The notes under the pieces are model-generated. The model ran no database searches. It had not been told where the DNA came from and saw only the letters and a program-made list of their open reading frames with translations. A stretch of DNA of 64,000 nucleotides, taken from Amphiscolops sp. MND2022 (taxonomy: Eukaryota). The stretch is taken from the NCBI GenBank assembly GCA_964187785.1, contig OZ076414.1, positions 53,010,001 through 53,074,000 of the forward strand, written 5' to 3'. How positions within the stretch are numbered: the stretch's first letter is position 1; each line of letters starts with the position of its first letter. Of the stretch, positions 7,032 to 62,600 are shown piece by piece. A program made the translations under genes and the position numbers.

Positions 7032-10000
7032 TGGCGCAGTAAAGCAAGATGAAAGAATCGAAAACAGGAGAAAGTACAGGCTCAAGCTCATCGAGCGGAG
7101 AGAACCCAGCAAAAAAAGCAATTGCAAAGAAAAAGGATACATACAGGAAGCGAAACTATTGTGGAGATGCTTCACACAATATAAAAATGCCGTAAAACAC
7201 TGATTTAAACGTCATGACAAACGACCGAGAGATCCTACAAGAACATAGAGACGAGCTGGAACACCGGATAAAGGATCTGTTTATCTGGGCGATAGGCGAG
7301 TCGGCAATAACGGAAATGACAAGGACAGAATACATTCCACAGGAGAGCTGATTTCGTTGGAATAACCAGAGTAAAACACGAAACGACCGAAGACGTATGG
7401 ACAAGGACAATACAGGTGGAGAAAAATTGTGACTTCCAAAACGTCATGAGGGTCGAGTAAATGGCTTCAAACTTTCTCTCAGTGATTGGAAGGTCAACAG
7501 GAGACTACGAACTCAAGAAAAAGATTCGAAACAGTGGTATGGCCATCGAGATCAGAACAGCCCTGATACATGAGCACATATATGACCGGCTGAACGATTC
7601 AAACGATTCAAATGACGGAAGAGAAAAAACATGTGCACGAAAGATCACACAAACGGAAATGTTAAGAAAAGACCAGGTAAGAGAAAGTAAAAACAAAACC
7701 AGACACTCTAAAGTTCACACAAAGAAATAACCGATGCGGACGATGAGGGGCACCAAATTGGACCAGACAACACACATGCCCACAAAGAAAGAACGGTAGA
7801 TGCAAAAATTGCGAAAGAAAGAAATTGCGAAAAGATGTGCAGCTCTTTGAAAAGAATTCAATACGTAAAAACGGCAACCTTATCAGCGGAAAAGGACAAT
7901 TTGGACTATGTCAAAATTCAGAATATCCACAACACAAAGCACAAAAAGGGATTTTACCACGCAAGACTATTGGTTGATAACGTACCAATGAAATTCATCA
8001 AAGGCAGTGGATCACCGGTATGACTAATTCCCGAGTGCTTGTTCAACGAAAAAACCAAATTAAAGCCACTTGAGACCTCTTACGAAGAAGTAAGCAACCA
8101 AAAGGTCGAATATAATGGATAGGCCAAGCAGAAGCAGCAGCAACAGTTAGAACAAATAAAAAACACTCGAGTTGACGTCATTGATTACATAAACTCAAAC
8201 ATCCCCGTTAGCCGGACTGGACTGGATGGAATGGCTGAAAACAAACCCAAACTCAAGTAACGACGCAGTACAGATCAACAACATGAATTTGGACACTACG
8301 GAAAAACGGATAATAAAGCTCCAAAATGACTTCAAGGACCTATTTTACAACAACCGGGAGATAAAGAACCTATCTGTGAAGATAAAGATGGAAGAAGGAG
8401 CACAAAAATTACAGCAAAAAAGAAGACCAATTCCGATACTTCTCCAAGAACAAGTAGCAAAAGAACTGAAGCTTTTAATAGACCACGGATACCTGGAAAA
8501 GGCAACTGCAGTTACCGGAGTCTGATTTGTCAGCCCAACAGTCATAACAGTGAAGGAAGAAAATCGCATTAGATTCAAGGAAACTAAACGAAGTAACAAT
8601 GAAAAGAAACACCCAAGTTCCGACATGGAAGAACTGATTTTACGGATCTCACAAACGACACCAGAGGGACTTGAAAGCGAATTTCTAGCCACGAAATTAG
8701 ACACCGATTACGCATAGGGAAAGATCAAACTGGACGAAAAAAAACCAGGAACCTCTGCATATTTACCGTAACAGAAGGCAGCAGGCGAATTCACAAGTTT
8801 CTACCGATTCTTGAAAAGAATCTACGGACTGGCCAATATCCCAACAATTTTTCAAGAACGGATAGACACTACACTAGAACATGAACATACAGCTAGCCTA
8901 GACGACATTATCATCGTAAGGAACGAAAGGAAACATGGAAAAACACGAAGCAGAGGTGCGAGAATCAAGGACTACTTTATAAAAATCTGGATACAGACTG
9001 AAACCAAAGTAACGTGAGTTTTTCAAAAACAAATTGAATGGGTGGGTCACAAAATAGACCATCAAGTAATACGACCACTGTAGGACAAATTGGACGCAAT
9101 AACAAAGATCATTATCCTTAAAAAAAAAACGAAACAGAACTAAAATCATTCCTGGGGGGATACAATACCTCTCGAAATACATTTAAAATCTGTCAACAAA
9201 CACAGAGACATAACGCAAACTACTAAAAACGCAGAAAGATTGGATCTGGACGGAAGAACACACAATCGATTTCAATATTTTGAAAGACTGTATAACGAAA
9301 CCCCCATGTTTAGCACATAATAACGCAAAAAACGACAATACATTAAGAACAGATACAACCACAAAAGGTCTAGGAGCAACACTTTGAGGTAGACAAAAAG
9401 ACGGAAATTTAATGCCGATTGGCTTAGCAAGCAGGTTTTTACCGGATCCTGAAAGGAAAAATGCAGTCAAGGAATAAGAACTACTAGCAGTAGTTTGGGG
9501 TTTAGAATATTTCCGTCTGCATATATACGGAAATTTGATTGAATTGCTATCAGATCACCAGGCCCAGAACCTTTGATAAAAAGCACACGATCAATTGAAA
9601 CAAACACCTCATGGCTCACAAGATGGCTGGATCGGTTGGCGTGCTTTGATATAAATCTAGCACACAAAGCCGGAAAACATTTGGCCCTGTCTAATTATTT
9701 GACCAGAAAGCCGGTATCGAAGAAAGAACCAATAGAAATTTACGGAGAAGAGTACGTCATTCATGCATGATACAATTACATGAGTTATTAACACTCACGG
9801 TAGCAGCAACGGTTCAACACAAGAACAAGAGAAATACAAACGGACAAGGACGAGCAGTGTGAACAGAAAATTAGCCAATCAGAAGCGAGATGCCAAAACG
9901 AATGAAAGTCAGAAAAAGACAAACTAACCAAGCACAGTTCGTTGCTAACAAAACAAAATACAGTCGAACACGTGAAAAAACAAACACAGAAGGACATTGA

Positions 10001-12410
10001 AAAATCGAACAAATCGAGAAAGAAGATCCGTCAGAAGAATCTTTAGAGTTAACAAACCGCTAGAAAGAACTCACAAAAACTGCCCAACGGAGTGTGGAAG
10101 AAATATAGCCCCACAAAATCACAGACAAGATATAAGAAGAATCGAAATGGAATTACATCAGAAGAGAAACGGAAAAAGTTGGGAGAAAATGGAACGACGA
10201 AAGTCTGAGTCGAAGGAAGAGACACTAATATGTGAGGAGTTACAGAGAGTAATCCACAAATAAATAAACACCCCCATTAAACTATCAGATGACCAACCAG
10301 GACCGAACAAATTGATCCAAATCGAAGAAACCTTAGAAGCAAATAAAACCCCGGAGAGTTTCAAAACCGGATCCACAAGCTCCAACAATTCCATTGACGT
10401 CCCTGCACCCAATTTTACATAGCACTTGGGAGCAACAGTGGTCCGCTCTATACAAATGGTGCAAGCGAGCCACATACAGACCGATAAGTCTTGGGACTTA
10501 GAAGAAACGGCCAGACAGGCGGAACAAAAGTTCACAACGGAGTGAAAAATTAATTGCGAATGAAACAACCGATGATGAGAAATTGTTAAAAACACTATCT
10601 TTCCGGAACCGAACACACTTGATCAATTACCTGAAGAATACAAACCATCCCAGAAGCACCTCTCAACCTGATTCGGAGTACTTTGTTACGATGATCGAAT
10701 CATTACACCACGAACACTACCACGAACAATCATAACGCTGCTACCAGAGGACAAGCGGCCATAAGCAAAATGACGTCAGCAGCGAAACTGTTTTGGTGGC
10801 CAGAACTACGAAAAAAAACTATCAACAAAAGTGTGAAGAATGCATCCTCTGTAGATGGCAGGTAAGAGTAATAAAGCTCAAATACCGATGACGTAAATTA
10901 CTTATCTATCACCGGCTGAAAATGCGAATCAAGAAATCCAATTGGATTTCGCCTGCCCAATAGATTCAAGCACCGTTGCATTTATCTACTATTTCTAATA
11001 AACAGTTATTGCAGGTGGCCGGCCGCGTGCTTATCCAAAACACCAAACAAAAAAACAACAAATGTTTTTTGGAACAATACATTACAATAAACGGCCTGCC
11101 ACAGACAATCGGAATGGATAAAGGCACAGCTTCTACCGGAAACTAACTCAGGGAAACTGAACATCGATTTAATACACAAAACACTGTAAATACACACACC
11201 AACCGGATTAGTAGAAAGAGGAAGGAAAACCCTCAAAGACTTTTTACGAGCGAACCTCGAAAGTAAAATTCGAATGAAGCATTAGGCCGTTAACTAAATA
11301 CAATGAGGACAACGGTCCGTTCGAGCATGAACGATTATCAGTTCGAACGATATCACGGGAGAAAACCGAGAACGGAGATACCCAATTAGTTGGATATATC
11401 TCCGAAAAACAATATATTGTTTCAGCTGAGCTGAAGACTCTACAGGTCTACAAAGTCTCCAACGGGAGTGGAAAGCAAGACCAGCTGGTGATGAAAGCTC
11501 TCAGAAAAACGAAAGACGTTAGTAACAACTTTCCATACAAATTTCTAAAGAAACAAAGTCTTACTAAATTTGGATGTATGCACGACCAAAAACCACAAAC
11601 AGCGATAGATGGTACAAAACACAAATACTACAAACGAAAATAAAAAAAGACATCGGAAAAGAGTCACCAAACCATTGAATATGATATTTCAGAATCCCTT
11701 ACCGAGGAGGGGGTAAAATGCCAGAGGTCCAGACGGAAGATTTACGACCAAACACAAAAACACCAGCGCTGAGCATATCGAACGAAGAAGCACCATAGTA
11801 CTAGTAGAAATCTTCAATTCAACAATCGATGGGGGAAGCACTCTAGCAAGTCCCGGCATCGGAAGAGGCAGGAAAAAATGATCCGCATCAGGTCAATCCA
11901 GAGCTCAGGAGACAACATCCTGAGGGTCTACGTTGAAAGTATGACAACAACAAAAGGACTAGGCATTACACACATAGAAGAAAATCCAAACATCGTTACA
12001 GTCGCCGATGGAAACCGATTCAAAAACAAACAAGTGTTAGACAACATAAATTTGAACGAAACTAATAACCGAACAAACTATTTTACGAAAATCTTCCCGA
12101 CTCAGATCCAGAAACCCTTTGATTCGGTACGGAAACCCGATCACATTTTGATTATTACAGGTAACACAAGTGGAATTGAGAAGCTGAAGACCGTTCAACA
12201 GAGTGAAGAAGAGCGACCGCAGGAAGAAACTACTTTGACGAGTCTTATACCGTCAACAATCAAAGAAGAAGATTGAAGTAGATAAAACTCCAGAAAACAT
12301 TTAGCTTTTTCGGTGCCTGACCGTCTACAAACACTGCTCATTCGGTGCTACTTGAACGGTTTGCTAAACTTTGTTTTGTCGTGGAAAATTTCGCTTAGAT
12401 TGCGGGGGAA

Positions 12411-14712: not shown

Positions 14713-14961
14713 TTATTTCCCCCCAACTTTCTTCTTGGGAATAAGGCTATCGATCGATTGTCCCTTCTCCAATTTTTTCTCCATTTCAATCAACAAGTTG
14801 ACTCCATCGACCACGAACTGTACCAGCTCCACTTCGGAAAATCCCAGCCTATCAGCGTTTGACACGTCATAGACTCCGTCGTCGGCGTCTGTGTCTACGC
14901 CACCAGTTCCTCGCTTTTGCAGACGAAGTAGCTCCATGATTTTGTCCATTTTCTTTTCATC
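14713..14961 (-). CDS. CK: Creatine kinase last coding exon
   Basis: [75 protein letters not shown]; acceptor CACAG at 14962-14966. Confidence 0.95.
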
Positions 14962-17900
14962 CTGTGCATGAACAGAAGTGAAAAATTTTTGAAATGTTTT
15001 ATGATTGAGGTGAAAAAAATTGGTTCTTCAAAAGATAACAGTTTAGAATACTTCAGACGTACAACAACATGCAAAAAAAACGATTTTTCTCAGAGGTTTT
15101 AGAACGCAGATAATTGTTACGACATGCTATCGGGTCGTTTTGAGTAGAACTTATTCTCACTGATTTTGTAGGAGTAAAGAAACTTCTAGTTTCCTCTTCT
15201 ACCTCTTCCTCGGTATTTTCTCTAATATTTCCTCTTGTTTCAGGTTTAAGGAGTTTCAACATCTCCTTCTGAGATTCGACAAGAAGATTCTTAATTTCTG
15301 ACGTTATTTCCTCCTTTAAGGAAGTCCTCAAACTTTCAAAGAGACTGTTTTCAATCCGGGGGGATTTTGGTCTAGAAGGCCCCGCTACCCCATCGTCCTG
15401 GTTTAGAGAACAAGGATTCCCTACTCCTATTGGTGAAATCAAGCTTTCACTTACGTTCTCACCGGTGCTTTCTTGCTGGTTGTTTCTTCTTTTCTGGCTT
15501 CTTGGTGTTGACATTTTGCTGCAGAAAGTTTTATCTTGAAGAATTGAATTTCTTTCAGAGATATTTTCAAGCAAAGTTAGATAGAAAATTAGAGTTTGGC
15601 GAAATTGGGAATTCAACTGAATCACACAATTACAGAAGACTGAGTCCCTTCGTCAACTAAAATCACCGTATATATACCCTCCTAGCATCATTTGATCACG
15701 AGTTGAAACCTTAATTTCCTTCAGATAATTAGTCATTTCCTGTATTTTCGATGAAAAAATTATTTGTTCCCAATTTTACGTCGACTTTTCGTCAACTTTT
15801 GAGACACGGTGATCTTCATCTTATATTAGTCATCAAGCATAATCATATCATTTCATCCCGGCGTCCTTTTTATTTCCTCCCAAGCAGGAAGTAGATATTA
15901 CTTCAGTCTGTCAAACCGGAAATACTTCCCCGTTTTTCTGCTTTGGTTCGTTAGAAATTGACGCTGAGGTGACGCTAACGTGAACAACTAATGCTTGATT
16001 TTGAGTTTTAACTTGGAAAAAATGCGATGACTAATGATTTCAGCCTTAAAATTTCCAATGATGCTAGGAAGAATGGAAACGAAAATTGTAAGATTAGCAA
16101 CAATTTCTAAATTGAACTCAATTTAGATGGTTATCAATTAATTAGAACAATTCAACGACGCATTAATGTTTACATTGGAGTACTAAACTGATTTAACTGC
16201 AACACTTGGCTATTACTAAATTGTCTAAAAGTTTATGGAAATATAACGTGATAATCATGAAATTTAAAGCGTACAAATCCTCACAATTAAGCCTTCATAA
16301 AATTACGAAATTATAGGTTAACGTCCTAACGTCGTCAATTTAGGTCAACGGAACAACACAACTTGTTACAATGATAGTTACAAATTTTAAGGTGTTCAAA
16401 CGTGGTTTTCGCGTACAATTTGGGCAACAATGAACATAGATATAGTGAAAAGATACAAATGTAGACAATGCATTAGGAAAAATATGATTACGTTATTAAA
16501 ATATAGTTCTTTCCAGTTCATATTTCACTTCTGCACAAACACGTCCGAGAGTCGACAAGTTATTTGAATAGCATTCAAAGACTGTAATATTTGATACAAA
16601 ATGCACAGTGACAGCCTTCTCTCCTAGAATAAACTGTGACATTTTATGTAAAGAGTAGGGAAGCACTAATTAGGTTATTTTGTAACGTGATTTTAATCAA
16701 CTAGCATTCAAATAGGCGAGTCCTGGACGTAATCTATTAGGTTTTGTTTTTATCTTTGTTGAACTTGGTATTGTCCTTAGACGCAACCATTCCGTCAAAT
16801 CCGTAATACCGATATTTATTTCACTATCCTGAATGGACTAGAACCAGCTACTTTGGATTTTGGACGTAACGTGGACGTACGTATTAGTATTAGCCTTAAT
16901 CCGCTGGTATTGACGTAGCTTTGACGTAAATTTGGAGTAAAATCTAGCTAGCTGTTATAGCTGTGACGTCACACTGACGTCTGATTTGGAATACTTTCTA
17001 CCTCGTTAACTAGTTAGCGGCGGAGTGCTGACGTCACAATTATAGTAATATTTGCATGTACCTTTTAATATTTGTTTGTTCAGCGACGCAGTTCCGTCCT
17101 ATTTAGAATTAATTGCTGTTCAAAGCGCAATTAAGTTGCCTTTCTTAGAAAAGGCGTGAATGTTTCGGCGTGCCATCTCGATGTATTTTTTATTTTAGAT
17201 CTGTTTGTTGTACGTTCCCGATTAACAATTTTGGATATGTTTTCGTTTAGATCGGTCTATGGTCTTTATTCCAAGACGTATTCTTAATTAAGTTTTCAGG
17301 TTGCGAATGATTCTATTTTGACGTGATAAAAGCGTCCTGCCGGAAATGTATGAAATCATTTTGGTTCATTTTGGTTTCTGTTCTCATTTTCATTTAAACT
17401 TTACGTAAGTTGGACGTTCGTTTTCGTATTTCTAGTCACAGTTTATTTCAGAGATAAAGTTTTAGAGTTACCAGTCAAAATAAGATTTGGGGAATCTCAG
17501 ATTGTCTCCATGTCCTCTTCCGATCTTCAGTCGTCGGCAACCGCAAGCCAGACCGGGAGCGGGCTGTGACAGGGCCGCTCTTGTGAGAAGATTGACGCTG
17601 CCCGGGGTTCTGAGTTGTGAGGCTATTGTCTGAGTAGTGGTGACCGTCTGTACTCTCCTCTCCAAGTCGTTCATAGGGCTTGCCTGCAAGAAACTTATCT
17701 TCTTTGGCGTTCCCGGCGGGGTGTTGAAGTAAGAGGATGCGTCTTCCTGGTGCACCTTTTCGAGATATTCTGCTACTTTGCTGCTTGATATTGATCCTTC
17801 GTTACTGTTGGGTTCTTCTACGACGAACACATCTGACGACATGCTTTCGTCCGGGCTTTCAGGACTGTCTGGAATTTCTTCACTTGTTTGTGCTACTTCG

Positions 17901-20900
17901 TTCCTTTCTTGCTGTGGGTAAGAGTTAGAATCGATGGACGACAGACTCGAGTTCAGCTTTATTCTTTTGTAGCTTGCTTCAAGCGAGTCTGCTGACACAT
18001 CAAAATATTCTTCTTCATCAGCTACAGCTTCTGCGGAGGAGAGGGAATTTTTTAGTATTACTCTATAGTTGGGTATTGCCTCTCTAGGAAGAGGAGTTGA
18101 AGCTCTTTCCGCAAAGTCACTTTCGTCTTCACTTGACGAAATGTCGATTAACTCAAAGACATTTTTGAGAGAGTTCATTTTGCGCCGTCGTTGTTGAGTC
18201 GTATGTTGTAGAGTTGCTGAATTTCTCCTTTAGTTGTTCCACAATGAATTTCGGATTGATTGGGATTAAGGAGAATATTGGGATAAATCCCTCCATTCTG
18301 ATTGGTTAAACAATCGTTTTAATCCTTTTTAATCTTCAGGTGTTGACGCTGTGCTAACGCCGTTTTTTATTGGCTGTAAATTAAATTATTTCGTTCAGCC
18401 AAGTTTGTCAACGTTATGCTGACGTCATTTTCGCTAGCTTAGCTAACTTTTGTTTTGTCACCGTTATGATGACGTCATTGTAGGTCATATGATTAGTTTT
18501 CTAACCTTAATGACCTTTTGCCGACGTTATGCCGACGTCAATTTCGTTGGTTCTCATCCAACTTTAGTTTTGTCACCGTTATGATGACGTCATTTTTGGG
18601 TTTGTTTTCAGATTCTCAGCTGTTTCTTGATGGATTCCCGTCCAATTGCTTCTGTTGCTGATCCTGGGGCCCAGAGTGGTCATGAGACTCAGTACGTGTT
18701 CTCTGAGGGAGAAATGCGTCTTAGTGACGCGGACAACGTTCGTTCGCGGGCAGTTGGTAAGTACTTTTTATTCCCTGATCCATTAAGCTTTAGTGAATGA
18801 TACTACTTCCAGATAGGCCTTTTCTGTTTCATATCTTCACAGCTTAGTTTTTCTTGACGCGTCGATGTTGGGATTGTACTTTTCTTTCAGAGCCCGAGGT
18901 GGTACCTCCTCCTCCTCCTCCTGACGTAGGTTTGGACGACACTCCTGCGGTCAGCTCTAGTGTGGTCCCTTCAGTGGGTCCAGCTTGTACTCCTTGTGTT
19001 TCCTCTGTTCCCGTCTCTGGTGGTGCTGAGACTCCTGATGTGTCAGGGTCAAAACCTGGCGTTACTCTTCCTGAGCCACCTGTTGGTTCTTCTTGCGGAG
19101 GCGAGATGACATCCCCCCTCGCGGGCGGTGATGACGTTTTCGGGGCGACAACTCCAAGAGCTGGGATCCTTAGTCAGACCTCCAGATCTCCTCGGTTGTC
19201 ATCTTTCTTGCCGGGTTTTGGAAAAACTTGTGCTGCCCTAGCGCAATCAGAATCGCGGAAAAGAGGTAAGCTTGAAGTATCATCTTGGTTTCTATATTGT
19301 GTGATAGTTTTGGTGTTTCATTTTTCTTTCTCTTTCCTCTCTTCTTCTAACGATTGTATCTTCGTTTGTATAATATATTGATGTTATAGTCGCGTCTACT
19401 GCTGCTGAAAGAACTGGGACAGGGTCTTCTGGCAAGAAAAAACGACAAGTGCGCGTCCAGACGGCTAACTTGCAGCTTGCTCAGCTGACTGTGAGCGGTA
19501 ATAAAGATTTCTTTTCTTGTAACCATAACTTAGAGAGTCGTGATGACAGTTTGAGTATGGATCTATTTTGTTTGTAGATTCTGGTGATTGTACTGCTCAG
19601 GTCATCTCTGGAGTTAGCGATATTCCGGAGGTTGAACGTGCTGCAGTTGGACCTGTTCTGGCGAGTGAGTATTTGTATTATGATTGTGTTCATTGTTTTC
19701 TCTTTTTCCTTTCTTTTCTCATTGGTACGTTTCGTAATCGTCATTTGGGCATTTTCTGTTGTCGTGCGGTTGCTATAGTCATGTTTTGGGTGGTATTAAT
19801 TCGTAGTTGTGTCGTTACATAGGGATGCAAGATCTCATGTCCCGAATGGAGAGTAGCCTGGAGGCTGTCGCCCTGCGTGAGAGTCCTGTCAGGAAATATA
19901 GCAGTCGTCACCACTTGCGGAAGGACATGGTGGGCAGTCATCCAGTCTTCAGTTTGTTCGTCAGTGGGGCCAGCAACGGGTCTGCACCGCGTTTCCACTG
20001 TATGATCTGTAAGCGCGATGTTTCGATGCAGTCTCGTGGTGCACGAGAGTTCGTTCGTCATTTCTCCGGAGATCGCCATTGGACACGAGATGTGGCATAC
20101 CGAGTGCAGCATGGTATGCCAGTCTTTGATCAACTGATGAAACCTCTCGAGTTGACGTCTGAGCAGCGGGCTGAGTATCTCAGTCAGGACGTGGTCGAGA
20201 AAGACGAGGGCTTCAGTTTCCCCGAAGATTTGTTGCCTGCGTGCACTCGGGTCGATTCGACGATTCCTCTTCTCACCATGGAGAATTGTGTCGCTGAATT
20301 GTGTAGGTGGGGCGGCAGCTACGTCTTGCTTCGTAAACTGTGGGGCAACTTTCGTGCTACTCTGGGACCTGACAATCCCCTATACAGTCTTCATTGGAAT
20401 CGCCCTGAGACACTGGTCAGTAGGTTTTTATAGTATTAGTCTTCAGTATACGTAACGTAGTCGTCATATTTAGATAGTTGGTTGGTAAAGTGGATTGAGG
20501 GATTTGTGTTTTAGTCGTTGATTTGTCGTGCCTTGTTTCCTCGGGTGTTGCGCTTCATCACTTCCCGGGTGACAGCTTTCAACTGCTACAGTGTGCGATT
20601 TGAGGAGCGTTCAGATGGCCAGTATTGTTTCGTGCAAACTTGGGATGAGGAGACCTTCCTGGACATTTGCATCAACGTGGAGCCTTTGGGTCAGCGAGTG
20701 CCTCGATCAGAGTTGTCGTCGTTGTCACGTATTGTCACAAGTCTGCCCTCATCTCCTTTCCCCATCAGTGTCCGTGGTACTGGTCCTTCGGTTCTGCGGG
20801 TGCTTAGTGACGAGCGTAGCGACGGTCATCGCTTTGTGTATGCCCGAGAGTTCTCCCCAGATGTGTTCCTCCATTGCTATCGTTTGGCCCATCAGGAGAT

Positions 20901-23900
20901 TTTTGGGCTTTTGGAAGTCACTACCATGGTTGATTTCCTGATGCTGCGTCTGCGCGGTGCATTGCAGGAGCCCTGGATGGAAGACTTGCCGGAACTTCGT
21001 CGCTGTGTAGTTGCCGGAAAAGTGGCCTTCGATGAGCTTCGTGGGGTCGTGGCAGAGTTGATGTCAATCTGGGAGACTGTCAGAGAATACGTCCGATACA
21101 CGGGTCCCCGACACATCAAGAGCGAGTCCGATAAAGTGGGTATGTTTTGTTTCGCAGGGGTATTTGTAGTCTTGTGGTAGGGTATTGTCACTGTGTCGGT
21201 TGAGCTAGGTATTCATTCTGCTGTTGTTATTTAGATGCGAGGCACTGACACGCTCGTCTATTCCGAGACAACGAACAAATTGCGACTGGGGACGTTGCTT
21301 CATGTACTTGATCTGTGTAAGTTGTTTTTGGTTTTTTCCTTTCGTCGTTAGTATGGCCAGTCTTTTGATAGGTTGTGTAGTATGGTGGTCACTTTGTCGT
21401 GTTTTCGTCTAGGTGACGTAGTCTTCGATAGTTTGTTCTTAGTTTTCTCTTGTGTTTAGATCATTGCACTTTCAAGAAGCAGAAGTCTGGACGTGCTGAT
21501 TACGCGTTCCATGCGTATAATGAAGTATGCCAGTTTGTGTACTGTTTGCTGACCCGTAGCCGCAAGTTGTCTAGTCTGCCACCTCTCGACGATTGGGAAT
21601 CTTACATGGATTCTTCAAAATTGGAGTCGTTTGAAAAGATTAGCAGTGACGACTTCTTGACCAATCATGAGTTCGGAGCTGAGTTGCATCGGTCAAGTAC
21701 CAGCGAGGTGTGCGAATTTCGTAATCGCTGTCGGGAATTCGTCGATCGTCTGGTTGACGTGATCTTGAGTCAGCTGGTCGTGTCCTCCGATTTCCTTCAG
21801 GGTCTGTATTGCTTCTGTCCTGAGTTGTTGCTAGAGGGGGACGACCGCCATATCTTCCAGCTGTTCTCTCGGCTGGTTCGTGTGCTTGAGCGTTGTGGCT
21901 GTCTTTCTAGTAGTGATGCCCTGACTAGTCGTGAGGAATTTGCTACGTTTGTCGTCAGTGCTAGGACGCGACATCGTGACTCAGAGAGAAGCGCAGAACA
22001 GATTAATGATGTTACTGTTTATCTGCTCTCTGATTACAGTTTTATGTCGCGAAGGAGTCTGGTGCGAGTCTTGAAAGTATGCTGCTTGGTGATAGATCGC
22101 CCTCAGAGGAAGATGCCTGATATTGAGATTGACTTGAAAGATTGTGCTGTTCCTGCTGCCGTCGTGATGTCGTGTTTGAGGGGCGTGCAAAGTCATGTGT
22201 CCTCTCCTGATTACAAACAGGGTGCTTTCTTCACTCAAGGCACGATGGAGAGTGTTCGTGATGCGATCGCTAGTAGTCGCAATTTCATGTCGTGTGCTGG
22301 TTTTGATCCGTGGGAGGGCTTGACGATTGGCGAACGTTCATCTTTCGTCCAGAAGTATTCGTCAGCTTTTGATGCTTATTTGAGTCGCAAGAAGAGCGAG
22401 GCTACTAAGCAGCTTCATAGTGCGAATCGGCAGCCGCGTCATGTTCAGTTCTCTGATTCGGGTGGTTCAGGCAAGTCAAGTGCCTGTAATTCTCCTCGTG
22501 CTGTGTTGCCGAGTTCCTCATTTGCTGTTGCTTCTTCGGAGTCAGGGTCTGAAGTTGGATCGTCAAAACAACGCTCATATACTGCTGAGACTGCATTAGC
22601 TGCTATTTTGGGACAGAAGAAGGAGGCGAAACCCACTAGTAAAGAGTCAGCTGTGCGGAAAGAGGCCTCCCCTAAGCTTGTCGTCAAGGATTCGGCGAAG
22701 AGTCAGAAGAGGGATGCCACGAAGAGTCCAAAGCCGTCTAGAAAACGGCCGGGTTCCAAGTCAGAGCTCGATTGAAGCTTATAACTGAGACTTTGATATT
22801 GCTGTTATTTTGAAAACTCTAGTGGTAGTCTTTGTAGTTCCATAGTTCATCCTGATGTATCGGGTTGTATTTGCTGTATGTTTGATGATTTTATTTTGCT
22901 GGCATTGGAATTAGTTGATGATAGATGGCTCCTCAGCAAAAATAGTATAGAAGTATTTGGAGTCAAAAAGAAAAAAAATCCAGAAAAAGGGAAGAAAAAA
23001 GGCCGTAGTATGCCAATAATTAAAGTTGTCAGGTCGGTTCGATCTGGACACTTAGTGATACTGTTTTCTTTCTAGTGAGTCGTAGTGATAGCGTCAAGTC
23101 GTCTGAAGTCAGGATTAGCGTTAGGTTTAGGATTAGGTCGTAAATTGTATTTTGCTATTTTCCTTGGGTTATATCCGACAGCTGTAGGCGGTGATCTTGG
23201 GGGAATAGGTGGACTTTCAATGGGTGGGGGGCGTCGTATGTATGGGTTATCCCCCACGTCTGTTGTAAGATTTGAAAAGTCCGGAGACAACGGCGCTGTG
23301 TCATTTGTATCTTCGATGTAATTTTTTGGCGTTTGCGACGTTGCGTCTTCGTCATTTGTATTTGTCGCTTCCTGTGTTTCTGCGTGGTGGTTGTTTCTTG
23401 TGTTTTCTGATGTTTCGTGTTCATCAATCTGTTTACCAAAATCCATTTCCCATGATACTGCATACCATTCATTGTGTGCGATTTTAACGTCTGGATCAGG
23501 AAGGTAGCCGTTGGCTCGTACTGTGACGTCAGGCAACCGTTGTTCAGGTACGTAAGGTCGTATTCGGACTCTATGTAGCGTTTGTGTGTATCTCGTTCCA
23601 AGTTTTCGTATTGTGTAGTTGTTATTTGATAGTGCTTTTATCACAATATACGGTCCTGTCCAGATGCAATCTTGGAACGCGAACTTTGTCGACTGATTGT
23701 CGGCTTTCGGGTTCAGAATGTAGCAATAGTCATTTACTTTGAGCGGGGCTGCCGACGCTTTGCGGTCGTAATATTTTTTGTATTTGAGATAAGACAGCAT
23801 GATGTTGTCCTTCGCTGTCGCCCTCACTTCGTTGATTTGTTTTTGTAGTTGTTCTGCTATGTCCGAGTTAGGGGTGGTTTTCCACTTTGGCTTGATGCCC

Positions 23901-26900
23901 AGTTTTAAATCAAGAACGTTGTAGGGTATACGTCCATGGAATACTGTGGATGGTTCACAACCCAGTGTTTCATGATACGTTGTATTGTAATTCATGACTG
24001 CAATTTGAACATATTTGTGCCACATTGAACGTCTTTCAACCCGTCGATATTTTTAGGGCAGTTTTGATTGAAGCATGAGTTCTCTCCAAAATTCCGATTG
24101 TTTGTGCATGTTTCGTAGACGCGTGGCTAATCTGGATTTCGAGTATCTGAGTTATTTCTGCAACGACTTCTGATCGGAATTGAGATCCCTTATCCGATAA
24201 TATCAGTGTTGGCAAGTATACGTGTCTTGTCATGACGTCGACAATGCAGCGTCCGATTGTTTTCGCTGTGACATTCTGTTTTGGGTATGCGAATAGGTAG
24301 CGTGAAAATACGTCAATCATCGTAACAATGTTTTGGTATCCTGCAGAATTGGGTAGGTTCGGCAAGATATCGATTTCGAGAATGTCCTCCGGGCCTAGGA
24401 CGTGTTCTGTATTGTTGATCATCTTCGGTCTGATTTGACTGTTGTTGATTCGTTTGTATTTGATGCAGTCTTCGCATCGCATCACCCATTGTCTGATCCG
24501 TTTTGCTAGTCCGGGATAATAGTATTTTGATCTGCATTCTAGGATCATTTTTGTGATCCCAGGGTGTTTTCCCATTTGTCCATGGAGTGCTTTCAGAAGT
24601 TCAGTAATCAAATGCTCAGGGATTAGTATTTGGTGATGAGTAACCTGACCGCACTCTCCGTAATATTTGCGCATGAGTATTTCATCTTTGACTATGAGTC
24701 TGTTTTCATGGACTAGAAGACGTTTTGCTGTCGGGTCAGTTTGTAAGAGATGTTTGTCATATTATTCGCATATCAACTTCTTTTTAATTGCTTTGAAAAC
24801 TTGGTTTGAGTCTTGTTCTACTCTGATGCGTGCGTCTTCTTTTATTGCCCCAAAGGTGTAAGAGGCTTTTTTTATCGGGATTGGTGTTGTTTCTTTTATG
24901 GCTAGTTTTATTTTTGTCGTCTCTTCATCGCGCGCATTTTGTCTTGCTTGTTCTTTTTGTAGGAGGATTTCTTCTTCGGTTTCAATTGTTTCATCTGGAA
25001 GGAAGAAAATTTGTTCTTCATCTGCGACGTCAGTAGATTGTAGGTTGACTTGTATTGGTCGGATTGTAATGTCCTCTCTTATTTTCAATTCAACTCGTTC
25101 TTTGGGAGTAAGTTCAATGCGTGATAAAAAATCGGCTGCAGTGTTTTGCGTACCAGCGACGTGCATTATGTGAAAGTTGAATTGTAGCACAGTCACACGC
25201 GTTCCACAGCGTAGGCGGTATGGCTTTTGTTTGGAAGAAACGCGTGACTGACCTATTATCGGTCATTACGAGTGTCGGTAGCGTCGTTTCCCACAGTATG
25301 TGGCTGTATTCTAGAAATGCATGGTAAATTGCCAAGAATTATTTGCAATATATAGACATTTTTAGTTGAGCTGGGGAAAATACTTTCGATCCGAATGCGA
25401 CTGGGGCGAACGTTTTCTTTTTGGAATTGATTTTTTTGTCATTGTCCTCTTCGATCATTAATGCATAGCCGGAGGCTCGAAAGCTGGCATCCGTCATTAG
25501 GACGTATTGTCGTCCTGTGATTGGTTGTTTGAGAGCCAATCCGCAGGCTTGCGACAGCGCTGCGTTGATTGCCTTGTAATGGTCGAGTAGCTCTTCAGTG
25601 ATTTTGATTTGTTTATCTGCTTTCAGCAGCTCATTGAATCCGAGTAATTTTTCAGATAATCGCGGGATGTAGTTGCGATAATAATTGACAAAGCCGATGT
25701 ATCTTTGTACTTGTTTTTTTGATTTCGGAAATCGTACATTTGCCAAGAATTTTTGTATTTTATGATCTTGGGGAGCGATTCCTTGCGGAGTGATTGTTCT
25801 TCCAAGGAATTCGACTTCAGTTACTCCAAAATGGCATTTGTCGATGGATAGTTTGAGTCCTGCTTGTCTGATGCACTCGAAAACAGCTCGGATGTTACGT
25901 ATTAGCTGCGTCACTGAATTGGCTGCAATCCCGATGTCATCCACGTATTGTGCGCACTGGTCTGCTTTGATCACTTTGTCTAGGTATTCTCTCATGAAAC
26001 TTGAGAATGCTGATAAGGCTCTGCTCAGTCCCTGTGCTAGGCGTTTGCAGGCGAACGTCCTGCTTGCGAAATTGAATGCTAGCATTTCTATGGATCTTTG
26101 ATCAGCCATTTGTAAGCAGTGGTATGCTTGCGAGCAGTCTAATTTGCAAAACAGCTTTTTAACAGCTAGGTGTTGAACTGCGTCTGACGAGGTACTAACT
26201 GGATGGTTATTGTTGATATAGTCATGTGAGATCAGTGCGTTTATTTTTCGCAGGTCGACAAGTAGACGCAATTTACCGTTTGGTTTGCGTTGGGCGAAAA
26301 TTGGGCTCGCGTATTTTGAAAACGGCAGGGTCGTTATGATGCCGTATCTGTGCATTAGTGCTAATTCAACTGTCAGGTCTTCTTTCAAGTTTATTGGTAC
26401 TGGTAGGCTTTGCGTGTAGATTGGGCGTTCATCCTTCGGGGTTAGCTTAACATTGAAGTTGTTGTTGATGCCAATGTCAAGTCGATGACGCGCAAAGATG
26501 TCATTGTATTCGATTATTGTTTGTTCAAGCTGTTTCCTGTCATTACCTTCGATTTGGGAGCCTTCCCACTGGAACATGTCTAGGAATTTCTTTCTTGATT
26601 CTTGATCTTTTGTTGGATCTAGTTCTTCTTTCTTGATGAGTTCGCGGATTTCTTTCAATATTCGCCGCTGGATTGGCGTATTCTCGTCCTCGTTTCCTGG
26701 ATTCTCAGGTGTGGGAAACCAGAAATTTTCGTCATTTTGTTCAGTTTCGTTGGCTTTCATGAGTTCATTGACGTACATGTGGGTGTCGTCAGGATCTTCT
26801 AGCAGTTTGAGTGCGGCGGCATCTATTGGTCGTATTTGTTTCGTGTCCTCTGGTTTGAGGATTTGTAGTTCTGCCAGTTTTGTGATTCTTTATTGTATGA

Positions 26901-29900
26901 GGGAAATCCGTTAAGTTGGCGATTCGGATGTTGAGCCTTTTGTTGTGGGCTGTCGCTAGTGCTGGTGCGACGATGATTGTTGCTGTTTCATCAAATTGTG
27001 GCAGTGGTTGTACCGCACCGGTGACGTCATTCATGTTTGTGGTTATTACTATTGCGTTCACTGTTGTTGTTTGTTGTGGCGGTAGTGTTTGATTTCCTTC
27101 TGCCATTATCTGGAGCGGTTTCGGATTGCATTTTTTCATTTCGTCTGTCATGTCTAGCGTCTCTTCGACGTGCGGGAAATTGATGGTTCCGTTGGCAGTG
27201 TCAATTACTGCTTGATGGTTTCTCATGAAGTTCAGTCCTATGATAGGAAATGACGTTTTCGATAAGATGACGAAGGTATCTGTGAAAGTGTATGTTCCGA
27301 TGTTGAACTGAATGTCCGCTGTGGCTATTGGTTGCTCTAGTTGTGCGTTTGCGCATTCAATCTTGAAGGGTGGTTGAGGATATTCTTTTATGACGCAATT
27401 ATCGCTGTTCATTTTGATCGCGTTGTAGTCTGACCAGGACATGGCGTTGATGAATGCGCCTGAGTCGACGAGTCCATCCATTGTTATCTCGCCGAATTCG
27501 AGTGGCAAATACAGCATTCTCCTTCTATTCTTGAGGACTATGGTGGAGTGGAGGGGTATGTATGTTTCCCCATCCTTTTCGGCTACGTACTCCTTGATTG
27601 AGTTGAGTGATGTGGGAAACTCGTCTGTGGACAGAAATGCTGTGGAGGAGTTGTGATTATTTCCTTCATTCTGTTGTGACGATGGGCGGTCGTCGGGGGC
27701 GTTTTCATTTTGTTCTAATTGGTTTGCAACGGGGAGTTCTCTGTTGATGAGGGGTGACTTGGTGGGAAGAATTGCATGCTGCTTAGGGTTGTCTCTGTAA
27801 TCTTTATCGTGGATGTAGGTGTTTTCTTGTTCAGTTTGTGGATATGGCCTTTTTATAGAAGCGAGTGCTTGTCGTCTTAGCCAGTCCTCTGTTGGTGTAC
27901 CGTTGCATTCAATCGTTGTGTTGTTGACGTATGTGGTAGGGGGATCCTCGGTTGAATACGCCCTCGCGTCTACTGTTTCCCCAAAACGCAGGCGCGGCGT
28001 AATTAGTTTTTTGGTTCGGTGTCAAAGTCGGTTGTTGTCATTTGGGCCGGAGTGTCCCTTTTTTGTTCTTGTGTATTGTGGCGTTTGGGGCGCTGGTCGT
28101 TGGCAGCATTGGCTCCATTCCAACAACTTTCCGTTTTGTGGGGCCTGCCACACGTGTCGCATTTAAATGGTTTGCCTGAGCTGCTGTTGGTTTGGCCATT
28201 ATTTCTCTTGGTTTGCATCCATTTATCTCTTTTCATCTTCCTACACTCCGCTTTGTAGTGTCCGAATTTGTTGCAGTAGAAGCAATACCCTTTCTTGGTG
28301 TTTTGCGTCGTGTTGTCGGCCTGTTTGGACTCAGTGTTTGGTGGGGCTGGCTCTACTTTGTTTAGTGGTACCAGGGTTACTTCATCTGGCGCTCCAAGGC
28401 CCTTAAGTCGCATTTCCCTTTCTAGGTGAAGTACGATGTCATTGTAGGGTTTATCTTCCAGGTACGCCCTGTTTAGTATTTTCTTTACGTGGTCTGGCAT
28501 TTTTGCGTAGATCGCCTTATCAATAAATTGTTGGGCTTCAGAGCCGAAAGCTTCTTTGGCAGTTTTTTGAAGTACATCCAGAAATTCGTGGAGTTTCTGG
28601 TTCGAGGGATCGAATTTAAGCGCATCCCATTCGCATCTTGCCTTGGCCATGGACAAATAGTCTCCGAAACGTCGTTTGAAAATCGTCATGATTTCATCAA
28701 GGGAATCCTTCTTCGTATCTTCGATATTGCGAAACGCCTGTAAAGCGTCCCCTCTGAGCAGGGAGTGGAAATAGTTTATTTTTTGGATTTCCGTAAGGTG
28801 TGGGTACATTTTGATATTATTACGAAAAAGGTCTTCGAAGAGTTCGAATTTTTCCGACTTCCCGTCGAAGGTTGGAAGTGACGCTGTTAGTGCTTTTGGC
28901 ATGGGCAGTGTAGTACTATCATGTTTATCCGTTGCGAATAAAGTCATTGCCACTGTTGGACGTTCTTTTGACGTCGGTTGGCTTTGTGACCGGGCTTTTG
29001 TTCGTTTTGGCTGGTTTGTGGAGTCAGTTAGGACTCCTGTCACCATGTTACGACATGCTATCGGGTCGTTTTGAGTAGAACTTATTCTCACTGATTTTGT
29101 AGGAGTATAGAAACTTCTAGTTTCCTCTTCTACCTCTTCCTCGGTATTTTCTCTAATATTTCCTCTTGTTTCAGGTTTAAGGAGTTTCAACATCTCCTTC
29201 TGAGATTCGACAAGAAGGTTCTTAATTTCTGACTTTATTTCCTCCTTTAAGGAAGTCCTCAAACTTTCAAAGAGACTGTTTTCAATCCGGGGGGATTTTG
29301 GTCTAGAAGGCCCCGCTACCCCATCGTCCTGGTTTAGAGAACAAGGATTCCCTACTCCTATTGGTGAAATCAAGCTTTCACTTACGTTCTCACCGGTGCT
29401 TTCTTGCTGGTTGTTTCTTCTTTTCTGGCTTCTTGTTGTTGACATTTTGCTGCAGAAAGTTTTATCTTGAAGAATTGAATTTCTTTCAGAGATATTTTCA
29501 AGCAAAGTTAGATAGAAAATTAGAGTTTGGCGAAATTGGGAATTCAACTGAATCACACAATTACAGAAGACTGAGTCCCTTCGTCAACTAAAATCACCGT
29601 ATATATACCCTCCTAGCATCATTTGATCACGAGTTGAAACCTTAATTTCCTTCAGATAATTAGTCATTTCCTGTATTTTCGATGAAAAGATTATTTGTTC
29701 CCAATTTTACGTCGACTTTTCGTTAACCTTTTAGACACGGTGATCTTCATCTTATATTAGTCATCAAGCATAATCATATCATTTCATCCCGGCGTCCTTT
29801 TTATTTCCTCCCAAGCAGGAAGTAGATATTACTTCAGTCTGTCAAACCGGAAATACTTCCCCGTTTTTCTGCTTTGGTTCGTTAGAAATTGACGCTGAGG

Positions 29901-32900
29901 TGACGCTAACGTGAACAACTAATGCTTGATTTTGAGTTTTAACTTGGAAAAAATGCGATGACTAATGTTTTCAGCCTTAAAATTTCCAATGATGCTAGGA
30001 AGAATGGAAACGAAAATTATAAGATTAGCAACAATTTCTAAATTGAACTCAATTTAGATGGTTATCAAATAACTAGAACAATTCAACGACGCATTAATGT
30101 TTACATTGGAGTACTAAACTGATTTAACTGCAACACTTGGCTATTACTAAATTGTCTAAAAGGTTATGGAAATATAACGTGATAATCATGAAATTTAAAG
30201 CGTACAAATCCTCACAATTAAGCCTTCATAAAATTACGAAATTATAGGTTAACGTCCTGACGTCGTCAATTTAGGTCAACGGAACAACACAACTTGTTAC
30301 AATGATAGTTACAAATTTTAAGGTGTTCAAACGTGGTTTTCGCGTACAATTTGGGCAACAATGAACATAGATATAGTGAAAAGATACAAATGTAGACAAT
30401 GCATTAGGAAAAATATGATTACGTTATTAAAATATAGTTCTTTCCAGTTCATATTTCACTTCTGCACAAACACGTCCGAGAGTCGACAAGTTATTTGAAT
30501 AGCATTCAAAGACTGTAATATTTGATACAAAATGCACAGTGACAGCCTTCTCTCCTAGAATAAACTGGGACATTTTATGTAAAGAGTAGGGAAGCACTAA
30601 TTAGGTTATTTTGTAACGTGATTTTAATCAACTAGCATTCAAATAGGCGAGTCCTGGACGTAATCTATTAGGTTTTGTTTTTATCTTTGTTGAACTTGGT
30701 ATTGTCCTTAGACGCAACCATTCCGTCAAATCCGTAATACCGATATTCATTTCACTATCCTGAATGGACTAGAACCAGCTACTTTGATGGATTTTGGACG
30801 TAACGTGGACGTACGTATTAGTATTAGCCTTAATCCGCTGGTATTGACGTAGCTTTGACGTAAATTTGGAGTGAAATCTAGCTAGCTGTTATAGCTGTGA
30901 CGTCACACTGACGTCTGATTTGGAATACTTTCTACCTCGTTAACTAGTTAGCGGCGGAGTGCTGACGTCACAATTATAGTAATATTTGCATGTACCTTTT
31001 AATATTTGTTTGTTCAGCGACGCAGTTCCGTCCTATTTAGCATTAATTGCTGTTCAAAGCGCAATTAAGTTGCCTTTCTTAGAAAAGGCGTGAATGTTTC
31101 GGCGTGCCATCTCGATGTATTTTTTATTTTAGATCTGTTTGTTGTACGTTCCCGATTAACAATTTTGGATATGTTTTCGTTTAGATCGGTCTATGGTCTT
31201 TATTCCAAGACGTATTCTTAATTAAGTTTTCAGGTTGCGAATGATTCTATTTTGACGTAATAAAAGCGTCCTGCCGGAAATGTATGAAATCATTTTGGTT
31301 CATTTTGGTTTCTGTTCTCATTTTCATTTAAACTTTACGTAAGTTGGACGTTCGTTTTCGTATTTCTAGTCACAGTTTATTTCAGAGATAAAGTTTTAGA
31401 GTTACCAGTTAAAATAAGATTTGGGGAATCTCAGATTGTCTCCATGTCCTCTTCCGATCTTCAGTCGTCGGCAACTGCAAGCCAGACCGGGAGCGGGCTG
31501 TGACAATAATGCCTAACTTTTTAGCATACTCTAGTTGATAAGTAATGACCCGGTCAAGCCGAATATAGTCTGAACCTTATATGACACAAGACAAATTTTT
31601 TTTACGATCTTTCTATGATAAGGCTGAAATTATATATCGCCCGTACTATGATCAGCCTGGATTCATAAATTGCCCAGGTTACCGTTCAATCCATTTTTTT
31701 CATTCAGTTAATCCAATTCATTCAGTAAAAAAGTGAGCTACCAATTCATAAAGCTGAAAGTAGAATCGGCAATGAGGTCACTTTTGTCCTTATGACTCAA
31801 TAAAAAACAATGCGGGTCGAAAATCCGTAGATTCTTGAATCGAATCTTGCTCAACTCACTAATGTGTTCGGTCTTGAGCAAGTCCTTCATCCTTAGCTTA
31901 GTGGCATGGTCATTGACAAAAAATAACGCATTTGTTGGAGAAAAGCAAAACATAAAAGAGCAACGGTGAGCAGTCGGACTTGACTACGTTATGCTAATTT
32001 GTCATTTGTGGTAACGGTTTGACAAAGATTATCGCCAAGTGTTTCAACAACATCCAAAATTCTTGTCAAGAGTTTCTAGAGTTTTCACACTGAGAGTGGA
32101 CTTCCCAGTATCAATTCATCCACAATTATGTTTTTCCTTCCGTGGATTCCTCATTTTATTATTACCGAAATACGTTCAAGAAGACTTTTCTTACTTTTCC
32201 CAAATTGGGCAGTTTGACGTGCACGCCACCCCTGAGACCCGTGCCCAAGTTACTGGGACAGGTCAAAATATAGCCCAAGTGGTCGTTATGCATGAATTCG
32301 TGTCCCCCTTTCTTGATTGCGCCCTCGAACTTATGCAACCCTTCCACGAAGCGCTTGAACACTGCGTGCATATCTCCCCCATCTTCCATGGAAATGACCC
32401 TAATATGGTCTTCCTCGTTGAGCCACACTACGAATGTTTTTGCTTCATTGTAGTAGATCCCTGAAACAATATTTTCAATGCATACTGTTACAAATAATGG
32501 TTTTATCCCCCTTTCACGTGCTATTTTTTTAATTTTATTGAAATTTCTAGATGTAGAAACATATTTAAACTGCTAAAACACTCAATTATGCAGGCATTTA
32601 TCGGACTCTCTTCAAAACGGCCTTTAGAAATTGAAAATTTTATAGTTTGAACTCTAACCTCTGGCATCGGGCCAGTCTCTGGCCATTCTGGACGAGTTCA
32701 GTAGAGGAGAGACTGGTTTGTCGAAAAGGAGATGCTCCTCGATCAACTTCTCTTGATCCTTCTTGCTCATCGTTTCCAGGGAATAATATTTACCCTAAAA
32801 CGAAGGTTGTTCGAAAATTATTGATTGTATAGTTTTCTGACAGTTCAAGAAACACTGCAGTGACTACGAGCTTTCTCGACTAACGTATGTGGAAAATTTC

Positions 32901-45157: not shown

Positions 45158-45317
45158 TGTGGAGTAAGGTCTACAGGTCACAGTATTACGTAACCGTCTA
45201 AAGTACCTGTCAAAACAATACTCAATCTGAACGAGTTAATTGTATTAGTATACCATATGATTTGAGACAATACAGTATTACCCTTCTTATCTTTTATCGA
45301 ACATTGAGAATACAACA
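45158..45317 (+). repeat. Array LTR 1 (160 bp, variant A)
   Basis: TGTGGAG...TACAACA with CTGAACGAGTTAATTGTAT. Confidence 0.93.
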
Positions 45318-45331
45318 TGGCGCAGTAAGCA

Positions 45332-50499: not shown

Positions 50500-50900
50500 T
50501 AGAACCAATACATAATAATAACAATAACAATAGCAACGTACAAGTCCGAAGATCAAATCGGATCAAAAACACTAATCCAATAATTAGACTAGGAAATCCA
50601 ATTACATTCTGATATTTGCAGGAAACACCGTCGAGAAGATAAACAAGAGACAACCGGGAAAACCCACGGAAGAAAAAGGATAACGGAGAGAAAAGACAGA
50701 AGAGAAAAGAATCGGAGGGAAAGCGAGGCATCAAAGATCACCACCGGTCGTAACGAAAACAACTTTCAAAACACCAGTGCTCGATGCTAATTAAGTTCAT
50801 ATTATTCATTTGTTAACCGAGTTTATGTACACGTATTGATGTACCAAATGTAAACATGTACCTACTTTTTGTTCTTATATTTGTTACCCAGAAGGGGGAA

Positions 50901-51079
50901 TGTGGAGTAAGGTCTAGAGGTCACAGTATTACGTAACCGTCTAACGTACCTGTCAAAACAATACTCAATCTGAACGATTTAACTGTATCTGAACGAGTTA
51001 ATTGTATTAGTATACCATATGATTTGAGACAATACAGTATTACCCTTCTTATCTTTTATCGAACATTGAGAATACAACA
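50901..51079 (+). repeat. Array LTR 2 (179 bp, chimeric B/A)
   Basis: Contains CTGAACGATTTAACTGTAT followed by CTGAACGAGTTAATTGTAT. Confidence 0.93.
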
Positions 51080-51093
51080 TGGCGCAGTAAGCA

Positions 51094-56664: not shown

Positions 56665-56843
56665 TGTGGAGTAAGGTCTAGAGGTCACAGTATTACGTAA
56701 CCGTCTAACGTACCTGTCAAAACAATACTCAATCTGAACGATTTAACTGTATCTGAACGAGTTAATTGTATTAGTATACCATATGATTTGAGACAATACA
56801 GTATTACCCTTCTTATCTTTTATCGAACATTGAGAATACAACA
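56665..56843 (+). repeat. Array LTR 3 (179 bp, chimeric B/A)
   Basis: Same 19-bp tandem duplication as LTR 2. Confidence 0.93.
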
Positions 56844-56857
56844 TGGCGCAGTAAGCA

Positions 56858-62587: not shown

Positions 62588-62600
62588 TTTTCAAATTTAG

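Follow-up and report, generated by a model that had tools for sequence, protein, structure and literature searches.

A conserved antisense gene with predicted introns and probable hAT-transposase ancestry in a Ty3/gypsy retrotransposon clade of Amphiscolops sp.

Background

Antisense open reading frames (ORFs) between pol and the 3' long terminal repeat (LTR) define the Retand/Tat retrotransposons of plants; most of them code for a TRP28 ('transposase 28') domain with predicted DNA-binding function, and TRP28 (PF04195) is present in 97% of Retand clusters (PMC11963269). The maize element Grande has an antisense gene ('gene23') whose product is nuclear and which is transcribed from a promoter of its own (cited in PMC8220671; review PMC7264820). 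A spliced antisense gene of a retrovirus is HBZ of human T-cell leukaemia virus type 1 (HTLV-1), as summarised in PMC11963269. Here, an antisense gene at positions 18630-22775 (plus strand) of a 64,000-nucleotide stretch of the Amphiscolops sp. MND2022 genome was analysed (assembly GCA_964187785.1, contig OZ076414.1, positions 53,010,001 to 53,074,000). This whole stretch is called the window, and coordinates refer to it. The gene is located in a Ty3/gypsy LTR retrotransposon, between pol and the 3' LTR, and faces gag-pol. It is probably an integral accessory gene of this Ty3/gypsy clade that descends from a hAT transposase and whose introns persist by virtue of its antisense orientation.

The layout is known from plant elements, whereas the animal host, the introns and the hAT descent appear to be undescribed, as far as could be found. 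A preliminary description of the window, made from its sequence, had known of no such spliced gene in an animal gypsy family. The open-access literature searched was in line with this: only plant antisense ORFs without introns were retrieved (PMC11963269, PMC7264820), and no animal gypsy element with an antisense spliced or hAT-derived gene was found in it.

Structure of the antisense gene

The gene model was built from stop-free segments and splice-site sequences and was then compared with divergent copies of the element. Eight plus-strand exons comprise 3309 nt (1102 codons plus stop) with zero internal stops. The seven predicted introns (80-158 nt) are all of the GT-AG type with pyrimidine-rich acceptors, and each would bring an in-frame stop if retained. 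The same structure had been proposed in the preliminary description; rebuilding it from the sequence gave identical figures. A 3333-nt model with the intron 6 donor GTATTT at 21160 was ruled out, as ten divergent copies conserve GTGGGT at 21136.

Exon 1 (18630-18756) starts with the ATG at 18630, which was placed by the model and by copy alignment and is conserved with its context in divergent copies. An acceptor-like TTTTCAG located 19 nt 5' of this ATG is conserved as well, and an extra exon in the 5' untranslated region upstream of exon 1 is possible. Exon 2 (18891-19265) is Pro/Ser-rich and of low complexity, and most frameshifts of dead copies fall here. Exon 3 (19390-19497) contains a basic KKKRQ stretch, a possible nuclear localisation signal. 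The placement of exon 4 (19578-19664) follows from the model and from comparison with paralogs. Exon 5 (19823-20415) encodes a zinc finger of the form C-x2-C-x17-H-x5-H and the domain preceding a predicted RNase H-like core; it is 37% identical to residues 79-249 of the related protein P0142. The first half of the core (strands 1-4) was assigned to exon 6 (20515-21135), which holds the sites of two hAT catalytic Asp residues without a conserved acid. Exon 7 (21235-21316) comprises 27 codons. Exon 8 (21460-22775, stop codon at 22773-22775) would encode the all-helical insertion domain and the C-terminal part, followed by a disordered Ser/Lys-rich tail, as judged from 532 database relatives and an AlphaFold2 (AF2) model.

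Selection on the coding frame was assessed by comparing the window with ten divergent copies. The ratio of nonsynonymous to synonymous substitutions (dN/dS) of the gene was 0.11-0.19 in the correct frame, at dS values up to approximately 1.0. For the identical copy set, integrase and RNase H gave 0.03-0.19. The preliminary description had proposed such a calculation, and a value of about 0.12 was obtained among copies, whereas two wrong frames yielded 1.4 and 1.7 with 41 and 109 stops, respectively. In a comparison of the window with one divergent copy, 149, 113 and 420 differences were counted at codon positions 1, 2 and 3. Intron length was altered in 66 of 70 comparisons, in 14 of these by a multiple of three. 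Exon length was altered in 34 of 80 comparisons; in those divergent copies that are best preserved, the changes are multiples of three. For exons 1-4, the three near-intact copies of greatest divergence had changes of +3, +3/-9/+6, 0 and +6. GT-AG was retained at introns 1-4 in most copies. The antisense gene is coding and is under purifying selection as strong as that on integrase; it occurs family-wide and has a conserved exon-intron structure.

Occurrence in the element family

The 1.07-Gb genome was searched with the region 19800-22775, resulting in at least 40 matches with 75-100% identity. All 20 nearest copies run into the adjacent integrase end. Ten copies that are 77-89% alike share the order of the window, beginning in the 3' LTR and continuing via the gene into pol. 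Sibling elements carrying the region with conserved intron positions, which had been named earlier as a means of checking the gene, were found in this way. When the exon 6 protein was used as query, 6593 first-look candidates appeared, and the scored matches numbered at least 150, with protein identities as low as 57%. Nearly all of them cover the whole exon within an open frame that is only slightly longer, and the exon borders are therefore widely conserved.

In the distant families L040, L041 and L042 (another assembly, same species), a multi-exon gene convergent with gypsy pol was found in identical layout. Exon 1 is recognisable in L040 at 57% identity, and exon 7 is present there as a separate, 81% identical exon. 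The gene was also found in elements whose reverse transcriptases (RTs) are only 67-70% identical. By these comparisons, it appears to be an old, integral part of the whole gypsy clade rather than 'cargo'. No inverted repeats bounding the gene were detected within 17400-23300, nor was the combination of terminal inverted repeats and an 8-bp duplication that would mark the boundary of a nested DNA transposon.

A comparison of L040 with window positions 15115-31505 showed gag-pol and part of the LTR to be 84% identical over one 7-kb piece with a sharp end at approximately 23001, whereas the accessory region was only 63-70% identical. At the protein level, identity was 94% for RT and 50-56% for the accessory protein. 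In L021, pol is less similar to that of the window (79%), yet the accessory gene is much more similar (79%) than that of L040. Because the similarities of pol and of the accessory region disagree in L040 and L021, they suggest that recombination has exchanged the accessory module among lineages.

Intronless paralogs

A sensitive search with exon 8 returned 532 relatives, all of them unnamed ORFs from two ENA samples. One of these, P0142 (890 aa), consists of a single uninterrupted frame in which counterparts of exons 5, 6 and 8 follow in the same order, and its use as query retrieved a set of uninterrupted proteins of approximately 800-890 aa. Nothing in this genome exceeds 53% identity to P0142; the second sample therefore represents a different organism. 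P0212 (861 aa) has more than 50 copies in this genome, many of them intact, and is convergent with gypsy pol in L032. In the other sample, P0207 is likewise convergent with gypsy pol (L033). Intronless paralogs were found in the corresponding position in L032 of this genome and in L033 and L031 of the other sample. As a further observation, an intronless paralog frame of 861-872 aa was located at G000:C5:40514273-40516855 and at more than 50 further places (L032, L034-L039), convergent with pol of other gypsy families. Intron-bearing and intronless versions of the gene coexist in one genome.

The alignment of the intronless genes with the spliced protein forms a single block (aa 206-1024); for P0212, identity is 28% over approximately 800 residues (E 9e-88). 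Junctions 5/6, 6/7 and 7/8 are free of gaps; near 4/5 the match is approximate. The intronless paralogs contain nothing that corresponds to exons 1-3, an N-terminal extension whose junctions are supported by conserved GT-AG sites and by the maintained frame. Splicing of the gene is supported by conserved GT-AG sites, by exons that keep the frame and by gapless colinearity with the intronless paralogs. Since the latter are likewise antisense to pol, the orientation permits introns to persist, yet intron persistence is not the sole reason for the orientation.

Protein fold and catalytic residues

The paralog P0212 was modelled with AF2 from a 41-row alignment (predicted local distance difference test (pLDDT) 80, predicted template modelling score 0.70). 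When the model was searched against the PDB with Foldseek, the top 12 hits were all Hermes hAT transposase chains (probability 0.99-1.00), and all others remained below 0.25. VIA-align matched residues 200-698 of the model to Hermes 135-609 with Z-scores of 12.8-13.6 over approximately 395 residues; the next fold, a generic RNase H-like one, reached a Z-score of 6.3. The top 30 Swiss-Prot models were all hAT or hAT-derived (ZNF862, EPM2AIP1, FAM200, ZBED5, Ac, GTF2IRD2 and others), and the language-model neighbours belonged to hAT/FAM200/ZBED5 clusters. In the P0212 model, the RNase H-like core is interrupted by a large all-helical insertion domain. All paralogs and the window protein retain the C-x2-C-x17-H-x5-H finger ahead of the core. 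The window protein would share the hAT fold by homology to this paralog.

Two catalytic Asp sites, one at the end of strand 1 and one after strand 4, were placed from motifs and secondary structure alone. Across the family, the strand 1 site varies and has no conserved acid; at the strand 4 site, a variable R/Q/V/L precedes a Gly that is nearly invariant. As candidates for the third residue, an invariant Gln-Ser, the Asp in 'YLLxDxxF' and a nearly invariant Glu (E608 of P0212) were considered, and none was assigned. Because the two Asp positions that could be placed have no conserved acidic residue, a complete DDE triad was not recovered and the protein most likely no longer cuts DNA.

Regulatory region and second accessory ORF

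A repeat search identified a promoter/enhancer-like block at 18388-18599 (plus strand) with four repeats of approximately 50 bp (family D1). Three of them contain the full palindrome of the cAMP response element (CRE), TGACGTCA, and one a near-copy. CCAAT boxes are located upstream of these repeats at approximately 18259-18369. In the window, TGACGTCA occurs 11 times, two per LTR included, versus 1.1 expected. CRE and CCAAT motifs recur upstream of the gene in divergent copies. When depth was summed over genomic contigs of four runs, the part of the CRE repeat block at 18400-18553 was covered approximately 20-40x as deeply as the gene body; the block or part of it is therefore common to many more elements than this family. 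These contigs were fragmented by the repeat and contained no informative junctions.

A second accessory ORF (17468-18178, minus strand; taken from the ORF list) encodes 236 aa, is acidic/Ser-rich, has the same sense as gag-pol and extends across the 3' LTR border. Its dN/dS is approximately 0.16-0.30 in most of the divergent copies, and a 63% identical homolog is present at the matching place in L040. The ATG at 18630 and the start of this ORF are 450 bp apart and face each other across the CRE/CCAAT block, an arrangement that suggests an internal promoter, perhaps bidirectional and shared by both genes. Downstream of the antisense gene, a pattern scan of 22701-23600 revealed ATTAAA at 23019-23024 (plus strand) as the sole poly(A)-signal-like hexamer after the stop and as candidate signal.

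Carrier element and host locus

The carrier spans 15115-31505 (16,391 bp) and has its gag-pol on the minus strand. By self-BLAST, its 3' LTR (15115-17571) and 5' LTR (29046-31505), both on the minus strand, form a 99.0% identical pair of 2460 bp with TGT..ACA ends; TGACGTCA sites of the 3' LTR are located at 16964 and 17029. The element is flanked by the 5-bp target duplication ATAAT (15110-15114 and 31506-31510; flanks read directly). Directly inside the 5' LTR, the primer-binding-site-like sequence TGGTGACAGGAGTC... was read at 29028-29045 (minus strand). The Pfam domains on the minus strand appear in the order DUF1759/Retrotrans_gag, Asp_protease, RVT_1, RT_RNaseH_2, Integrase_H2C2, rve and Integrase_p58_C, and gag - protease - RT - RNase H - integrase is the Ty3/gypsy order. 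DUF1759 in gag is also common in BEL/Pao elements; the carrier was assigned at group level, by LTRs, target duplication and domain order. The preliminary description of a 16.4-kb element bounded by target duplications, with the gene between pol and the 3' LTR, agrees with the LTRs, the ATAAT repeats and the Pfam domains.

Coding regions of the carrier were taken from the ORF list and Pfam. Gag (DUF1759/Retrotrans_gag) is located at 28003-29556, the protease, reverse transcriptase and RNase H region at 24762-27517 (four ORFs in the window copy), and integrase (H2C2 finger, rve core, p58_C-like end; two ORFs) at 23072-24674, all on the minus strand. Integrase and the antisense gene are convergent and 296 nt apart, and the 5.5-kb gap between the integrase end (23072) and the 3' LTR (17571) houses the gene. 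Pol of the window copy is not uninterrupted: protease, RT, RNase H and integrase are distributed over six or more separate ORFs, whereas relatives of the carrier have a single pol ORF of 1098-1714 aa. A broken pol next to an intact antisense gene, with LTRs diverged by 1%, may be due to chance. The open frame of gag extends upstream via the primer-binding site by approximately 130 codons into the 5' LTR, and its counterpart in the 3' LTR is a 190-aa ORF at 15053-15625. This extension is probably a chance one, and the true gag start probably lies further downstream.

Creatine-kinase (CK) exons were recognised on the minus strand at approximately 37598, 32275 and 14913, with the motif RGTGGVDT and including the stretch 14850-14975. 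The element is inserted in a CK intron in the orientation of CK. Its plus-strand gene consequently lies antisense to the CK pre-mRNA, as had been described before. Between the LTR end at 15115 and the next CK exon downstream, only some 150-200 nt remain, and the insertion might affect CK splicing or polyadenylation. Elsewhere in the window, a unit of approximately 5.7 kb with a strong A-over-T strand skew forms three tandem copies at 45158-62588 (98.6-99% identity), and a 69% similar stretch was noted at 7323-9631 and 10724-11142. Self-comparison also revealed a tandem array with many offsets (approximately 64-bp and 128-bp steps; 72-91% identity) at 36126-37349. An Rfam scan of the window yielded no family.

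Discussion

It is considered probable that the gene descends from a hAT-superfamily DNA transposase and has retained its N-terminal zinc finger, RNase H-like core and helical insertion domain. After integration of the element, RNA polymerase II would transcribe the gene from the internal CRE/CCAAT-rich block (18259-18599), and the host spliceosome would take out the seven short introns from the plus-strand transcript. In the genomic RNA of the element, the introns would be present as reverse complements (CT..AC), would not be recognised and would survive reverse transcription into each new insertion. The product may be a non-catalytic, dimeric, zinc-finger protein with sequence-specific DNA binding that serves the element, e.g. 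by regulating the LTR or internal promoter or chromatin. This DNA-binding role was guessed because domesticated hAT proteins (ZBED, GTF2IRD2) act in this way and because the same has been proposed for the Retand/Grande antisense proteins and HTLV-1 HBZ. A regulator of the element's own promoters or chromatin is a tentative assignment by analogy and rather doubtful. That an animal gypsy clade long ago adopted a hAT gene as a needed non-catalytic factor, with changes of intron content while the gene was borne in antisense, has slightly less than an even chance.

Several observations weigh against this explanation. The hAT fold was seen on a paralog that is only 28% identical to the window protein. 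Exon 8 of the window folded separately (pLDDT 75) had no significant match in the PDB, the Swiss-Prot models or a wide VIA search (best Z 5.2), since the helical piece is separated there from the beta-sheet core; the hAT assignment consequently rests on the full-length paralog. A search of the ESM Atlas with exon 8 likewise gave no usable match. Pfam searches revealed neither hAT (PF05699) nor zf-BED nor any other domain, either in the window exons at E-values up to 1 or in eight relatives at 0.1, and the family profile did not match PDB sequences. The nearly invariant E608 leaves a place for a catalytic residue at the third, unplaced position. The first 100 codons evolve faster than the remainder (dN/dS up to approximately 0.5, still below 1), and exons 1-4 are without an intronless counterpart. 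The whole frame is intact in only three of the 20 nearest copies, that of the window included; the remaining ones are frameshifted, with exon 8 and the low-complexity exon 2 as the main sites, the pattern expected of dead insertions. Transcription, promoter, splice junctions and poly(A) site of the gene are predictions drawn from the genomic sequence.

The gene could alternatively have entered this particular copy of the element in a single nested insertion event, whether as a DNA transposon or as a transduced host gene. A protein family with a hAT transposase fold probably does go back to such an insertion or capture in an ancestor, and an ancient capture is likely to be the origin of the gene. 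For a recent event, this explanation was refuted and keeps practically no probability: the gene has the same place and orientation in the 40 or more copies, whose subfamilies are 77-89% alike, it is also present in families with RTs only 67-78% identical, one from the other sample included, and it has no bounding inverted repeats. Only marginally more credible, and still very improbable, is an active hAT transposase that catalyses cut-and-paste or uses the retrotransposon as vehicle. The whole hAT architecture is recognisable, acidic residues occur near strand 1 in some members (e.g. a conserved Glu after Phe/Tyr in the intron-bearing clade), and E608 could be the third catalytic residue. At the second Asp position after strand 4, however, the nearly invariant Gly follows a variable R/Q/V/L, the strand 1 site is not conserved family-wide, and neither inverted repeats nor a match to the Pfam hAT dimerisation domain were found.

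Two further explanations accept a real gene and are unlikely without being negligible. The 5' part of the model might be wrong: translation could begin within exon 5 or close to it, in the manner of the intronless paralogs of approximately 860 aa, and exons 1-4 would then be untranslated or spurious. The paralogs do lack a counterpart of exons 1-3, and the low-complexity exon 2 is the main frameshift site with dN/dS raised up to about 0.5. This is opposed by the length changes of exons 1-4, which are all multiples of three in the three most divergent near-intact copies, by the GT-AG sites kept at introns 1-4 in most copies, by a dN/dS that is still below 1, and by an exon 1 that is recognisable in L040 and has a conserved ATG and context. 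Slightly less unlikely is a product that acts against the element or for the host, be it a repressor of copy number or an antisense transcript feeding small-RNA silencing. Double-stranded RNA could arise from pairing of the genomic RNA with antisense transcripts that cover 4 kb of the element, and self-limiting regulators are known from other transposons. Selection, however, acts on the protein sequence (dN/dS 0.12) and not on transcription alone, and the gene has persisted in numerous families that are actively amplifying and contain many intact copies, which is consistent with a factor beneficial to the element.

The integral accessory gene of hAT descent therefore remains the preferred explanation. 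The earlier notion of an accessory gene protected by its orientation is supported in this respect by the sibling copies and dN/dS; the term 'cargo' proved too weak for a gene integral to the clade, and the orientation is not explained by introns alone. If the explanation is true, gene sets like those of complex retroviruses (antisense, spliced, with an own promoter) would extend to LTR retrotransposons of animals. One class of mobile elements would have recruited and disarmed an enzyme of another, with benefit to a transposon and with an outcome like host domestication (ZBED, GTF2IRD2, FAM200). Thousands of candidate copies and paralogs that vary in intron number would offer a rare natural test of intron retention, gain and loss, in a gene inherited between copies only via reverse transcription of the complementary strand. 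In genome annotation, such genes are easily taken for host genes or nested DNA transposons.

Comparison with known systems

The plant antisense ORFs of this position (aORF-3R) in Tat, Retand and Grande elements resemble the window gene most closely in layout: they are located between pol and the 3' LTR, are antisense and occur in all or most copies of their lineages. In both cases the region between pol and the LTR is long and contains tandem repeats, and the product is presumed to bind DNA or to be nuclear and has a transposase-related domain (TRP28 in Retand). In contrast, the window gene resides in an animal genome, as the creatine-kinase host gene shows, and would have a hAT fold instead of TRP28; a Pfam search of the window exons and eight relatives gave no match to TRP28 (PF04195). 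It also differs by its seven introns and by the occurrence of intron-bearing and intronless paralogs in one genome, whereas introns are not mentioned for the plant ORFs as far as the accounts in PMC11963269 and PMC7264820 go.

HBZ of HTLV-1 and the window gene, the latter spliced by prediction, are both antisense genes at the 3' end of a reverse-transcribing element, and HBZ acts in the nucleus. CRE sites figure in the HBZ system as well as here, where they are located upstream of the gene and in the LTR. HBZ, however, is a small bZIP protein that is transcribed from the 3' LTR with one intron, whereas the window product comprises 1102 aa, would be transposase-derived and has seven predicted introns and an apparent internal promoter. 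The two proteins are unrelated in sequence and fold.

With hAT transposases (Hermes, Ac) and their host derivatives (ZBED5, FAM200A/B/C, GTF2IRD2, EPM2AIP1, ZNF862), the core fold with helical insertion matches at a Z-score of approximately 13 over approximately 395 residues. An N-terminal CCHH zinc finger is a further shared feature, and the catalytic residues appear to be lost, as in the domesticated members. The window family differs from this group in that sequence similarity was not detectable with Pfam or the PDB profile, and in that the window gene is borne by a retrotransposon rather than being an inverted-repeat element of its own or a single-copy host gene. In antisense-intron retrotransposition indicator cassettes, which are laboratory reporters, an antisense intron escapes splicing from the element RNA and survives reverse transcription. 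The same principle would apply to the window gene, which in contrast to these cassettes is natural, has seven predicted introns, codes for a protein and is kept by selection.

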